The notes: a model not told the origin generated them from the letters alone. A stretch of 64,000 nucleotides of DNA from Oculina patagonica (GCF_052425735.1 NC_135765.1:1736001-1800000), one strand, 5' to 3'; counted from the stretch's first letter, positions 41,647 through 47,600 are shown. Made by a program: numbers and translations.

Positions 41647-44600
41647 TCACAAAGACGTTTGTGGTGTATGGCAGACAAATGACAGCAGACTCTGTTGTTT
41701 ACTTGTACCTTCACTACCCTCTTTGGTAGCATTGCAGAATCGGAGGACCCCCTGGATGAGGTCAGAGATTTTCCAGCCACGCGAGTATAAGCACACCAGT
41801 GCCTTGAGAAGCTTTGAAACAAAAACCAGACATAGTGTTAGACGGGACAAACTAGCGATGTGTAAAAATGAGCCAAGCAAACATTAGAGAGGTTAAGCAT
41901 GACGTTAACGGCAGACGGCAAACTAACTTCTGATTTTGAGTTCTTTTCCTTTAGTCCGTAAATAATAAAAGCATACAAAAATGGAATAACGTCTCCTAAT
42001 ATTCATTGCAAATACAAATAATTTCACTCTACTGTACACACAACTGAAGAGAGACGGCAAAAGTTTCATTTTTGCCGTTTGCTGTAAACGTAATGCTTAA
42101 CCTCTCTATTATGTAACCGCTGGGAACGCGGGCAAAAGTGGAGCCATGGCAAGGGCGGGAAATTCGTGTAACCGGTGGCAACACGGACGCACATGTTACC
42201 CATGGCCAACGCAAGAAACATGAAACCAGGAGCAAGTGTGGGAAAACATGCAACCAATGGCAAGCGCGGAAAACATGTAACCAATGGAAAGCTCGGGAGA
42301 ATATGTAACCAGTGACAAGGGCAGGAAAACGTGTAACGAGTGGCGAGCGCGGGAAAACTTGTAACCAGTGGTAAGCGGGAAAAAACATGTAATCAGTGAC
42401 AAGCGCGGGAAAACGTGTAACCAGAAGTAAGCGCGGGAAATTATGAAACCAGTTGCAAGCGCGGGAAAACATGAAGCCAAAGGCGGGAAAACGTGTAACC
42501 AGTGGCAAGCGCAAAAAAACGTGAAGCCCGAAGCAGGCGTGCGAAGACATGTTTTGTTGGCAAGCACGAGGAAACATGAAACTTGTGGCAAGCGAGAAGA
42601 AAGTTGCGGAAGCCAAAGCACGAAAACTGGTCTCAGCTTGTTTGGCGAGAAATTACAACCTTGGTTAGAATAACGTAATAACCAGGAAACCCCAAAAAGA
42701 AGATAAAATTCAAAATTCTTTTGGAAACATCGCTAAAAAGAAATTTAGCGGCACAAGGAGAGGTGAAAGGTGAAATTCTAAACTGCGCAAAAAGTAACGA
42801 AATGAAATTAAAAATATATATAATAAAATAATGTGATTTTCAAAGTGGATCTTACCCGTGACATTCTCCGGTCACCAAAGGTATGATAAACTACCACAGG
42901 GCACCCAGCTGCAGAAGCAGCCACCCACTGAATGACAGCCTTGAGTTCCGGGTCCCCCCTGAAAACCCCGCATCCCCAGTTCCCTGTAGCAACGGGGCGC
43001 ACTTGGGGTTCCCCGGTGGGAGCTACCAAAGATGCTTCTGCAATTCTAACCGCTCCACATACTGTCAAAGTACTTAAATGTTCCGCGAATTCATTTAACG
43101 TTTGTTCCTCATTTAACTCCTCATCAGAGAAAGAAGGCGATTCTTCCGTTGTCGTTTTAACAGCTTCAGGCTGTTTTTCTTCCCGAGAGTATCGCTCACC
43201 GTCTTTGGTCGCTTCTTTTGTTCTTGCCTGTATCATTTCTGATACGCGCGTCACTCCATCGAGTACAATTTCTTGGGAAAGCTCCTCCGCCATTTTAAAG
43301 AGAGCTAGTGGAGTTTCAGAGGAGCGAGCGCTTAACGCGCTATCAGAAGACACCTCTTTAACTCCCTTTAAGTCGCTCTGTGCCTCCGGCTCTGAGGATT
43401 CTGACGAGCTTGTTTCACTCTCGTCCTCTGCACTGATGTCCGGTGTGTTACTTCCTGTCTCCTCACTCTGAGTTGAGTGATCACTTTCTCCGTCGTCTGC
43501 TCCTCGCTCCTCTTTGCCATCGACGGTGGATGAAGTAAAATCATGTACTGTTTTTTCAGTACAAACTTCTGCAGCCTCGGCGAGAGCGGATGAAAACGTC
43601 TCCTCTAGAAGTGCATCGACGTGGCCATTGAGAACGCTTGACAATTCCTTGTTGTCCGTGTTCAATTCAGAGCTCTGCAGAGACTTTTTGTCAATATGGC
43701 TTCCGCCATCTGCAATGGAGTCCAATGGTTTCTTTTCATCGACAAAGCAAATCGAAGATCTAATCGCAGAAGCAACAACTGCACTTGACAGTTTTGTAGC
43801 CAACGTTTCAAACAGCTTTGTATCAGAGACGTTAAATTCTTCACTGCTTTCCTTCCCTTTCGCAGCTTCTTGCTCGATTTCGTCAAATTCTTCCAAAAGG
43901 TTTTGTCTAGGGTTAGAAAACTCAGGATCTGCACAATTATCTGTACTATCTTTTGCTGCGCTAAACCTTTCAAGTTTTGCTGAGCTGACTAAAGAGGATA
44001 AATCTTCTACAAACTCGGAAATGTTAAAACCATTTGAAAACCTTTTTCTTGGCGGTGTCTCGGGTTTAGAAACTTTCTGGGTTAAAAAAGAAATAAGACT
44101 ACTGCCATTCTTCACAGGAGAGCTTAATTTCTTGGGGCTCTTCTGAAAAACTTCTTTGGTACCCGCGGCCACGTGTCCGGGCGAGGTAGCCGTGGTTGCT
44201 ATGGCAGTGGCAAGCGATGACGTCAGCTCAATACATGACATCAGAGAATTGGAGAGCGAATCAGCGAAGCTTTTTACAGAAAGCGACAATGCTGCACCTT
44301 TGGCAGGGCTTGAATCTAAACACAGAGAGTTGCGAAATCGATCCGAATCAAACGATGTCTGTTCCAGGTCGAATATGGCGGGGGAGGACGGAGGCGTCCC
44401 GGGAACAAGCGGGGTATTTGAACCACTGATGTTTTGCGCCACGCACTTCGGGAGCGGCGACGGCCTGAGAAGGCTTTCCGAATAAACCCGAGTTTTTTCG
44501 GGCGAACTTCCGAAGACTTCGATTAAGGACTTTTTCATCACATTTGTTAGAACATCCCCGTCCACAAAGTCTTCGAGGATGAAATTATTGTTTGATTTCA

Positions 44601-47600
44601 TTTCATCTAAGGCTTGAGATAACGCAAGATTAACAAGGTTATCGCTGAATTCCTGGATTTTCACGACTGTGAGGTCTTGTGGTAAAGATTGTTCCACATT
44701 ACTTTCAGTTTCCTCCGATGATACCACGAGATTCTCCGACGAGACCACGAGATCTTCCGATGAGGCCACGGAGGACTCTTCACTTTCAACATCTACAAAG
44801 GAAAGAAGAATCAGAATTAAAGACTCGTACAACTGTGGTACAACTGGTTACAGGATCAAAGGGTGCTTAACGTTGACAATTTGTCTCGTACAGGCGATCA
44901 AAGTGGATGGACTGGTTGCATTTATATGGCGGATCTCACAAACCGTTGAGAGGCGAGAATCAGGGTCCTACTTCATGAGGCGCTTGCTGCAAGAAGGAAC
45001 GAGCACGATATTTTCGAGTTGGATTGGGGCCTGGGATTAAAAGCGAGCTAGCTCAGTTCGCGTGTCAGTTCGCGTGTCAGTTCGCTTCTAATCAGGCTAT
45101 CGACAAAAAATAGTTTATTGCAGGGAATGTTAAAGGGGCTAGGTCACGTTGTTTTAGGTAATTCTACTTATTTTCGTTCATTAAGAGCTCTAAACTTCAA
45201 ATTGGCAGAGCAAAAGCCTTTATTGGCAAAATCACGGCTACATAACAAACAAGGATGATTTTCGAGCATTGTAAAACACTTTTTCATACAAGATAAAGTT
45301 GAAAAAAGTCGGGCCGACGTTTTTCAACTTTACCCGTAAGCCATCCGTTTTAATCTTCTCGAATTTTGTCCTTCCATGCCCCTTTTTGGCCTTTTTGTGT
45401 TTCTTTTGAATTCTTCTAGTTTAAGCCGTTATTGTGATATTTCAGTTGATTCTAAGACCAGTTGGTCAGTGCCGAAATTGCCTAAAATTGCATAACAGCT
45501 GCTTTAATTACGCTGTGTAATTTCCCACGCATCTTTGAGTTGCAAAAAAATCTGTGAGGCAGATCGTAGGTAACATCGCTTGAACTTACGCTCCTTGTTG
45601 ACTTTTCGGACATGTAACCCTAACCCTACAGTTACATTTTGTACCATAACAATTCCCACGTTTTTACAACTGCAACTGAAACAGCATCAAACATGTTTCC
45701 AGAAACATTTGTAGCGTGCGGTGTTTCCCCAATGTTTCCTAGTTTGCTTTTGTTTCTAGCGTTATTTTTGTTCGGCCAAGAAGCAAAATTTGCTTCTGCT
45801 ACACGGCAAAAACATTTCGTGTTTCCGCGCGGCATGGGAACATGGCAAAACGAGGAAACAATTAAGGTCGGCACACACTAGGGGACTAGTCCGAGGGACT
45901 TGTCGCAGGAATTTTCTTCGAGGACCAGTCCCCTAGTGTGTACTCGTATTTTGCATCGAAATTCTTGTCGCAGGGACCACATTTTTGGTCCCTGCGACTA
46001 GTCCCACGAATTAAGCTGGTTTGATTTCTGGGACTAGTCGCAGGAACCAATAGTCCCACAAATCGGTCAATTTTCTATTGTGTACACACTAAGGGATAAG
46101 TCCCTGCGACTATTCCCTTCGACTATTATTACCAGAAAGAAATTCATTGGTCCTCTTGAGCAAGTGAGGTGTGGAAATCTCACGCTTGACTTCACTGATG
46201 TTGCTAAATCACTAGGTGTATTAATTGATAATAGACTCACCTGGGATAGTCATATTAAGAAGCTTTCGAAATCCTTTTCCGCCCAACTTAAGATGCTAAA
46301 AAGGATGAAGTACCTCCCGGTAAACCAATTAGAGGATATTTATTTCAAAATGATTCTGCCAAATGTAACGTACTGCATATCAGTTTGGGGTAGTTGTTCA
46401 CATGCCCTTTTTGATGAAATTGAAAACCTGCATATAAAAGCTGCTCGGCAGATACATGATGTTCCCACCACCTATGATGATCACCAAGTTCTAAAACGTG
46501 TTAAATGGCATAACCTGGCCTATATGTATAAGAAGAAGGTGGCACTAGAAATGTTTAAAGTGGTAACTATGGAACACAGACTATCTTCTTATTTTGAGGA
46601 TACCAAATCAAGCAGAAGGGGAAATTCGCTTAGAATGAGACAAATGAACACTGAATTTGGCAAACAATCTTTAATTTTTAGAGGGCCAGTAGTCTGGAAC
46701 AGTCTAAATGAAAATATCAGAAAACCTGTAAATATAAATCAATTTAAAGCTGCCATAAAGAAATGTAAAGCGATGGACAATGTAAGTTTTATTAAAGGAA
46801 CATGTACTAACAATAATAAAAACTTAGAAGATTTTGTGTATTTTTAAACTCTATATTATATTTTTAATTTTATTATGCATGTGTATTTGTATTCTAGGTA
46901 ATTTTTAAATAATCATGTTATGTATATTTCAGTAATGTCATGAAATTTTAAAGAATATAAAGAACTGTATAAGTTATTTTCTATTTTTTATCTGTAATTA
47001 AGTTTTAAAGGTCCACATCAGCCCTAGGCTGCCATCTTTATAGACCTTTGTTTTCAAATAAAGTATGTATGTATGTATGTATGTATGTATGTACTAGTCC
47101 CCTAGTGTGTGCCTACCTTTATGGAAACATGCTTCCAGCATGTTTTCTGGTTTTGCCGGGCCTTAAGCGCACAAAGAATTACGTACCTGAGTGACTTTGG
47201 ATAACTTGAGACCCAACTTCCGGGTTGTAGAATCCAACTAAAGCTTTGTTAAGTTCTCTTAACACAGCTGTTTCCTCGTACTGAGCTTCTCTCGGCATGT
47301 TCTTGAACTGTTTTGCATCAATTGCTACCACCGTGGTGTGAAAATCACCATTTTCATTACGCTATACAAAGAAAAAGAAATGAAATGAAAAAGAAACCTT
47401 GAGTCAAGTTGGAAATCGTTATTGTCCATGTTAATTACCATAAAGTCCTTCAAATGTCAGGTCAGCTTTCATAATGTGCCGGTGATGAAGGCAATACCCT
47501 TTTGTTGATAATTTCTTTATTCTCCTCAACAGACTGCTTTAAAATGTATTAATATTGTAATGAGAAGTCAACAATTGATCACAAACCTGTGATTCGTCCT

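Follow-up and report, generated by a model that had tools for sequence, protein, structure and literature searches.

A divergent coral PARG paralogue with a conserved 614-residue module inside its catalytic macrodomain, and its possible link to AKAP3, AKAP4, AKAP11 and SPHKAP

Introduction

Macrodomains are compact. In canonical poly(ADP-ribose) glycohydrolase (PARG), as represented by the human (PDB 4B1G and 7KFP) and Drosophila (PDB 8ADJ) enzymes, a helical N-terminal domain and a macro fold carry the signature motifs of the family, and the surface loop that concerns us here is 8-13 residues long. We analysed a stretch of 64,000 nucleotides (nt) of the coral Oculina patagonica (GCF_052425735.1, NC_135765.1:1736001-1800000), hereafter called the window, in which positions are counted from the first letter. 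It harbours a PARG gene on the minus strand, from 51756 to 41647. The coral protein shares the helical N-terminal domain, the macro fold and all the signature motifs with canonical PARG. In contrast, it has a conserved module of 614 residues in place of the short loop, it is devoid of the long N-terminal regulatory region and it belongs to a divergent paralogous line.

The other closest system described is the AKAP110 family (PF05716). The C-termini of AKAP3, AKAP4, AKAP11 and SPHKAP correspond to the C-terminal half of a PARG macrodomain, over ~100-122 aligned columns, and the N-terminal part is supposed to have been lost (PMC11377751, 2024). The origin of these four proteins has been dated to vertebrates, and F/Y-A at positions 1 and 2 is reported to be the hallmark of helices that anchor type-I protein kinase A (PKA), among them those of SKIP (SPHKAP) and AKAP3 and the distal one in AKAP220 (AKAP11) (PMC12083921, 2025). 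In the AKAP110 family, as in the coral protein, the macrodomain C-half is preceded by a long helix-rich, Ser-rich region with amphipathic helices that start with FA, and this family provides the nearest non-PARG structures and feature neighbours of the coral protein. However, its members lack the N-terminal catalytic half, whereas the coral protein keeps that half together with the catalytic residues and stays below the threshold of the Pfam AKAP_110 profile.

In the literature that we searched, we found no description of a conserved module of ~600 residues threaded through the catalytic fold of a PARG. An earlier note on the window, made from the sequence alone, had pointed out this architecture. 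It is not entirely absent from annotation, as RefSeq contains models of such proteins under the name 'uncharacterized protein'. Our favoured interpretation, to which we assign a probability of roughly 0.6, is that the gene encodes a divergent PARG paralogue with a docking-scaffold module of 614 residues, and that it keeps the ancestral architecture of AKAP3, AKAP4, AKAP11 and SPHKAP.

Results

A 614-residue insert splits the PARG catalytic domain

We assembled the gene model using tblastn, with the full-length product of an orthologous transcript (P0005) as a guide, and read the splice sites directly. The model comprises 10 exons and codes for a protein of 1082 residues. The insert is bounded by a 10-residue helix motif at residue 359 and by VATGNWGCG at residue 983, which leaves exactly 614 residues in between. 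The helix motif, together with the insert's initial 14 residues, is found at the end of exon 8 (47187..47361), which closes with a phase-1 donor (CTCAG/gtacgt). The other 600 residues of the insert (protein residues 383-982; 42994..44792) are encoded by exon 9 (42856..44792), within a stretch of 679 codons devoid of stops (44847-42811, minus strand). The acceptor of exon 9 is tttgtag/AT at 44792 and its donor CACGG/gtaaga at 42856. The insert is followed in the same exon by the macrodomain's C-terminal half (42856..42993), which begins with VATGNWGCG, contains the diphosphate-binding loop GNWGCGVF and was delimited by a Pfam match and an alignment with PDB structures. An open reading frame of 614 codons at ~45% G+C cannot be a product of chance.

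The Pfam PARG_cat_C profile is cut at a single point, as its positions 108-158 match in exon 8 and its positions 159-205 at the end of exon 9; altogether, exons 5-9 cover positions 32-205. The PARG_cat_N profile matches the orthologue P0005 with an E-value of 9.9e-23, and it matches exon 1 of the window alone weakly (E 1.6e-3). The catalytic signature GGG-X6-8-QEE, the YSGYG motif and GNWGCGVF are all intact in the assembled protein. Eukaryotic PARGs (PF20811 and PF05028) otherwise have a contiguous macrodomain, with a short loop ahead of the diphosphate-binding loop; here, 614 residues take the place of the short loop. A stop is found five codons upstream of the ATG, and the orthologues, including two RefSeq models, start at the same point; there is thus no long N-terminal region. 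Because the 1937 nt of exon 9 are not a multiple of three, this exon cannot be skipped, and it also encodes the GNWGCG half of the domain.

The earlier note had proposed a gap of about 614 residues between the two motifs, most of it at 42994-44792 in a 1937-nt stop-free exon with in-phase canonical splice sites, intact catalytic motifs, no long N-terminal region and an exon that cannot be skipped. The assembled model agrees with it on each of these points, the length of the gap and its coordinates being exact.

The insert is retained in transcripts of related corals

We compared assembled RNA contigs from three runs, belonging to three studies, with positions 41600-47400. The contigs are ~93% identical to the window and thus come from related corals rather than from the window species. 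In all three runs, the joints are exactly those of the model (44792/47187 and 41811/42856), with GT..AG ends on the minus strand, and a single contig of 2951 nt spans exon 8, the complete exon 9 and exon 10. Mature mRNAs of related corals thus retain the insert, and both junctions that the earlier note had predicted are used.

We also looked for transcripts from which the insert is removed. Three in-phase AGs are present within 42 nt (43022-43063, minus strand) upstream of the GNWGCG codons and could generate exons starting at 43061, 43037 or 43022. The RNA contigs of these three runs show no internal joint within exon 9 and no use of any of the three sites, one of which, the AG at 43024-43023, is unconserved in relatives. 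A minor insert-less isoform may exist alongside the insert-containing form, as contigs can hide rare isoforms.

Spliced full-length products with the N-half, the insert and the C-half were found for several orthologues, namely P0005 (1077 residues), P0025 (1088 residues), P0104 (1033 residues) and P0111. In P0053, from a genome contig of 193 kb, the RELNKAL motif, the insert and GNWGCG follow one another in a single genomic open reading frame.

The insert is conserved in corals and sea anemones

With the insert alone as the query, we collected 49 protein clusters from corals and sea anemones, at 84-38% identity, all of which carry the PARG C-half. The nearest relative overall is P0001 (84% identity). 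An exhaustive search of 1.84 billion representative sequences with a hidden Markov model (HMM) of the insert yielded 17 proteins at E <= 0.001. Among the clear matches, each product that reaches the end of the exon has the same architecture; the weakest matches consist of short fragments plus a single repeat protein that is unrelated. A second, word-index search of proteins with a divergent alignment returned the known coral set only.

An alignment of 14 inserts, 38-71% identical to that of the window, contains ~60 invariant columns, which are grouped in blocks. Relative to the syntenic locus of a related species (L005), the ratio of non-synonymous to synonymous substitutions (Ka/Ks) is 0.27 over the insert, 0.05-0.11 in codons 100-300 of exon 9 and 0.31 in the C-terminal part of the macrodomain. 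Comparison of these sequences thus shows purifying selection on the insert in stony corals and sea anemones.

These data bear on the possibility that the functional protein lacks the insert, the latter being spliced out through an internal acceptor, or representing a transposon or an assembly artefact. The three in-phase AGs, together with the fact that contigs can miss rare isoforms, would allow for the first of these scenarios. Nevertheless, no corresponding joint occurs in the three RNA data sets, one contig spans the whole of exon 9, one of the three AGs is unconserved, and the reading frame stays open in about 50 clusters under a low Ka/Ks. Furthermore, Pfam detects no transposon domain in the insert, and the same exon is found at the syntenic locus. 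We therefore regard this explanation as very improbable. A transposon, an artefact or a chance reading frame, the first two of which the earlier note had allowed for, are rejected in view of the RNA joints, the conserved frame, the Ka/Ks values, the lack of a transposon domain and the syntenic exon.

Two of the orthologues have counterparts in RefSeq. P0025 shares a 90% cluster with XP_058961180 of Pocillopora verrucosa (1088 residues), and P0111 is the product of LOC116292090 of the sea anemone Actinia tenebrosa (1178 residues), which keeps the split architecture with a longer insert. A Gly/Asp/His-rich expansion of the insert characterizes the sea-anemone orthologues, with which P0055 and P0080 are also counted. 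The A. tenebrosa protein has lost the Tyr clasp; its catalytic signature is GGN...QQE, and GSWSCG stands in place of GNWGCG. Similarly, P0055 and P0080 have degenerate catalytic motifs in an otherwise conserved split architecture. In stony corals, by contrast, every catalytic motif is kept, the signature being of the GGG-X8 form. Judging from these motifs, members of the insert-bearing family range from apparently active enzymes to probable pseudoenzymes; a derivation of AKAPs from such proteins would require a path of this kind.

Possible relatives outside cnidarians were observed among AFDB cluster representatives. R7VEF1 (1265 residues, named PARG) aligns over its residues 1-1262 with residues 1-1069 of the query (E 9.7e-32), better than any canonical PARG, and this end-to-end alignment suggests a similarly large insert. 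R7VEF1 is absent from the matches of the insert HMM among the 1.84 billion representatives. From its accession series, we take this protein to be that of the annelid Capitella teleta. Another long protein, A0A820W361 (1084 residues), likewise matches the coral model from one end to the other. On the basis of predicted structures, these two proteins may represent the same architecture in other phyla.

Both halves are predicted to form a canonical PARG fold

We determined the corresponding distances in canonical PARGs. In the alignment with PDB structures, Drosophila PARG has 8 residues where P0005 has 609, in agreement with the short loop that the earlier note had ascribed to canonical enzymes. 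In 30 canonical PARGs from metagenomes, 21-41 residues separate the start of the RELNKA motif from GNWGCG. The distance between QEE and GNWGCG is 110-129 residues in the same proteins, as against 672-715 residues in the coral transcripts.

The fold was predicted with AlphaFold2 (AF2) for P0005, whose exon 9-encoded part is 70% identical to that of the window protein, from an alignment that included 27 canonical PARGs from metagenome loci. The predicted local distance difference test score (pLDDT) reaches 85-97 over residues 10-375 and 84-93 in the segment 975-1070, and it is mostly below 50 in the insert. An earlier AF2 run on a 30-row alignment had a mean pLDDT of 35, and we used only its helix pattern. 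The P0005 model superposes on human PARG (VIA-align) with a Z-score of 38.8 and a root-mean-square deviation of 2.2 Å over 435 of 497 residues, at 34% identity. As the superposition spans residues 3-1074 of the model, both halves are placed as in the enzyme and the insert is looped out. The two halves of the orthologue thus reassemble into a PARG fold in the model, as the earlier note had supposed.

Corals also express a canonical PARG. A coral metatranscriptome contig (L021:3-920) codes for a protein that aligns with human PARG over 267 residues with a score of 339 bits and ~60% identity, and its loop is of normal size, with 24 residues from the RELNKA motif to GNWGCG. This contig is present in many coral-labelled runs, one of which also holds part of the gene of the window. 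A tree built from the catalytic columns groups the five insert-bearing proteins in a single clade (SH-like approximate likelihood ratio test, 98), the stem of which is long, with 1.53 changes per column. The insert-bearing gene is thus a second, faster-evolving paralogue. The separate canonical paralogue that the earlier note had considered does exist, and the gene of the window is not the sole PARG of corals.

The PARG encoded by another metagenome contig (L009:311-1888) adjoins the insert-bearing clade in the tree. It has 41 residues, more than is usual, from the RELNKA motif to GNWGCG and the motif LLQWLAASQAG in its C-half. From its sequence, it may represent the same paralogue line in an insert-poor form.

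From its intact motifs, the coral protein probably hydrolyses poly(ADP-ribose) (PAR). Conversely, it might be a pseudoenzyme or a PAR reader in corals as well, with a macrodomain that binds PAR without hydrolysing it, hydrolysis being left to the canonical paralogue. The expression of that paralogue in corals and the long stem of the insert clade are in keeping with this idea, as are the degenerate motifs of the A. tenebrosa orthologue, P0055 and P0080 and the retention of the binding half alone in vertebrate AKAPs. We find it unlikely, at about one chance in four expressed loosely, given that all catalytic motifs are kept in stony corals, that the C-terminal part of the macrodomain is itself constrained and that the P0005 model superposes closely on the active human enzyme.

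The insert is acidic and largely helical

The insert had been described in the earlier note as an acidic, low-complexity and disordered scaffold. It is indeed acidic, with an isoelectric point of 4.4, a net charge of -56, 16.8% Ser and 11.9% Glu. In contrast, low complexity concerns only 8% of its 20-residue windows, and the ~60 invariant columns and ~12 helices predicted in the AF2 model of P0005 contradict the notion of a disordered scaffold. The helices are amphipathic, coincide with the conserved blocks and are of the form F/L-A/S-D/E-x-L-S-x-x-hydrophobic; they are accompanied by an invariant block rich in Ser/Thr-Pro. Thus, most of the insert is neither of low complexity nor disordered; it is a conserved, largely helical and constitutive part of this PARG paralogue.

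The features of the insert are described here in the order of translation, on the minus strand. Its start harbours a tandem repeat of 21 nt (seven residues, of the SSEDLVV type; 44711..44770), whose copy number differs between species according to the repeat analysis and the alignment. It is followed by a conserved helix (44599..44661) that fits, in 13 of the 14 orthologues, the generic pattern of AKAP helices and is also present in the AF2 model, and then by the invariant block that begins with PLPKC, a cluster of Ser/Thr-Pro sites (44377..44457), as seen in the alignment of the 14 inserts. The first of the FA-start helices (44176..44274) lies within the most constrained codons, 100-300 of exon 9. 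The second (43750..43815) gives the best fit to the AKAP helix in the pattern search; its consensus is FATKLSxSIVDSAI in most orthologues, and the window has LATKLSS, with LA instead of FA. A poorly conserved, acidic and Ser-rich linker (43372..43497) is the truly low-complexity part by alignment and composition. It precedes a helix with weak, non-significant Pfam matches to SmAKAP (43228..43302). The third FA-start helix (43027..43104; FAExLSxLTVxGAVxIAE in most orthologues) has an invariant F in the alignment and is located just before the macrodomain C-half. It contains the AGs that correspond to exon starts 43061 and 43037, and the start at 43022 lies just downstream of it.

Possible relation of the insert to AKAPs

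The macro half of AKAP3, AKAP4, AKAP11 and SPHKAP begins where the coral insert ends, and corresponds to the ~100 residues that follow the insert. Positions 609-667 of the 690 positions of Pfam AKAP_110 match all eight insert-bearing C-halves that we compared, with E-values of 2.5e-4 to 2e-3 and 17-20 bits.

We compared the coral model with the 550,129 AFDB Swiss-Prot models using Foldseek. Nine PARGs were retrieved first; AKAP4 from three mammals (E 9e-8 to 3e-6) ranked directly after them, and then came AKAP3 (1.4e-4), SPHKAP (9.8e-4) and AKAP11. One of the SPHKAP alignments is limited to query residues 198-872 and therefore excludes the macro half. In feature searches of the ESM Atlas with the whole insert and with two non-overlapping segments of it, devoid of the macro half, clusters of AKAP11 and AKAP4 figured each time among the highest-ranking named hits, with scores of 0.60-0.77.

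The helices of the insert provide another resemblance. Two matches to the generic pattern are conserved across orthologues, as are three helices that start with FA, and we regard them only as candidate PKA-docking helices. In addition, the AKAP4 peptide EFADSISK, which is given in a published paper, resembles the invariant peptide KSFADSLS of the insert.

Several results weigh against our favoured interpretation. The match of the AKAP_110 C-terminal segment, 19.9 bits at best, is under the 25-bit cut-off of the profile, and the same segment also matches 5 of 10 canonical PARGs at 10-19 bits, one of them at 18.8; its preference for insert-bearing PARGs amounts to no more than a trend. Because canonical PARGs match as well, the C-half does not tie the AKAPs specifically to the insert-bearing paralogue. 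AKAP_110 has no match in the insert itself, whether whole proteins or insert blocks are searched, and the insert HMM found no vertebrate AKAP among the 1.84 billion representatives. The Foldseek alignments with AKAPs cross low-confidence regions of the model, with template modelling scores of ~0.1-0.15, and by the calibration of the tool itself the ESM Atlas scores are leads only. Helices of the AKAP pattern are not enriched over shuffled controls (P = 0.32 and 0.07), and thus the helix argument rests on their conservation and not on their number. The fold model is that of an orthologue and was built with canonical PARGs in its alignment. As for the gene itself, the RNA contigs come from relatives ~93% identical to the window, and assembled contigs can conceal rare isoforms; moreover, the acceptor of exon 7 is non-canonical (CG) in the window assembly. 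Overall, these sequences give no statistical proof that the insert is homologous to AKAPs.

Other searches gave no further connection. The matches of the insert to SmAKAP in Pfam are non-significant (E 0.14-0.78), with no hit to PF10522. A word-index search that used the QWIAAS words of P0055 and was aimed at vertebrate AKAPs returned only the A. tenebrosa orthologue, and the only match of the insert profile to solved structures was to the PARG C-half.

The insert may instead be a lineage-specific, acidic and flexible linker with helices of its own and without any relation to AKAPs, the likeness being due to composition and to the known similarity of the C-halves. This would account for the failure of the insert HMM and Pfam to reach any AKAP, for Atlas scores below 0.8 in lists that also hold other Ser-rich testis proteins and for motif counts that do not exceed those of shuffles. 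It is also consistent with the fact that Foldseek runs through the disordered tails of ordinary PARGs (Drosophila PARG, query residues 8-762). Composition would hardly explain, however, why the four members of a small vertebrate family all come after the PARGs among 550,129 models, with one unrelated protein among them. Nor does it fit well with an SPHKAP alignment that does without the macro half, with a published homology boundary that coincides with the insertion point or with the conservation of the FA-start helices. We thus deem an unrelated linker rather unlikely, though a more serious contender than a pseudoenzyme in corals.

We slightly favour common descent of the insert and of the upstream regions of the AKAPs over its opposite. 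That the coral protein resembles an intermediate between PARG and AKAPs is supported by the position of the insert, the structure-based ranking, the language-model features and the helix motifs, not by significant sequence statistics. A stronger version, in which the protein is an extant PARG-AKAP hybrid, i.e. a catalytically competent PARG that anchors PKA through its FA-type helices and represents the ancestral structure of the vertebrate AKAP family, is tentative, and we would put it somewhat below even odds.

Other exons and surrounding sequence

Upstream of the split region, exon 1 (51378..51756) contains the start codon and codes for the N-terminal helical part of PARG; it was located by tblastn with P0005 and is consistent with the weak PARG_cat_N match and with the upstream stop. 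Exons 2 (49778..49913), 3 (49326..49437) and 4 (48654..48773) were placed with P0005 as the guide and by reading of splice sites, with AG and GT sites at exon 2. Exons 5 (48165..48221) and 6 (47959..48048), identified with Pfam and the same guide, encode the GGG part of the PARG signature and the catalytic Glu-Glu, respectively. Exon 7 (47587..47664) codes for the Tyr clasp. Exon 10 (41647..41811), placed with the P0005 guide in agreement with its RNA joint, encodes the C-terminal helices and the stop codon. All these exons are on the minus strand.

The acceptor of exon 7 is canonical in the syntenic relative (ttttttacag/GGAGTT), and the upstream intron sequence is wholly different (window 47665-47690, minus strand). 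In the window, an in-frame AG 21 nt upstream of the acceptor would add RPRIFPP to the protein. The CG may reflect an error in the assembly, the use of a non-canonical site or a genuine lesion.

Intron 8 (44793-47186) has 2394 nt, compared with ~660 nt in the syntenic relative. It contains an open reading frame on the plus strand (46080-46847) that resembles the reverse transcriptase of long interspersed nuclear elements, with no Pfam hit, and a repeat (45092-45479) with a word depth of ~2,000-8,700 in RNA contigs. Intron 9 harbours a minisatellite of 28 nt (42111-42551) in ~11 copies, with superperiods of 56 and 84 nt, which gives rise to spurious open reading frames of 195-207 residues on the minus strand. 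The neighbouring gene (53735-57677, minus strand) codes for a protein that combines a ZZ zinc finger with EF-hands (E-values in Pfam, 1.9e-10 and 4e-15). The EF-hand gene is also present upstream of the PARG orthologue in the syntenic relative, and thus synteny is kept.

Biological implications

We propose that the 614-residue module, which sits in the short surface loop between the helix motif and the VATGNWGCG loop, would function as a docking scaffold, its FA-start helices being candidate sites for the dimerization and docking domains of PKA regulatory subunits. The scaffold would tether a macrodomain that binds PAR, and in corals probably hydrolyses it, to a particular cellular site. The housekeeping role of PARG is probably filled by the separate canonical paralogue. 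AKAP3, AKAP4, AKAP11 and SPHKAP would then derive from such a gene, once its exons upstream of the giant one had been lost.

The coral gene is a plausible starting point for AKAPs that end in half a macrodomain, as it codes for a whole PARG and has a region of the anchoring type in the same exon as that half. If the link is true, the origin of AKAP3, AKAP4, AKAP11 and SPHKAP would be explained, and PAR binding by these AKAPs would be predicted. With its decayed catalytic motifs, the sea-anemone orthologue would naturally represent an intermediate step towards a pseudoenzyme scaffold, and the coral protein would offer an experimentally tractable case in which PAR hydrolysis and kinase anchoring could be studied together. 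If the protein is an actual hybrid of PARG and AKAP, the origin of this AKAP family would be shifted from the vertebrate base to a time before cnidarians and bilaterians separated, and cyclic AMP signalling would be coupled to the turnover of poly(ADP-ribose).

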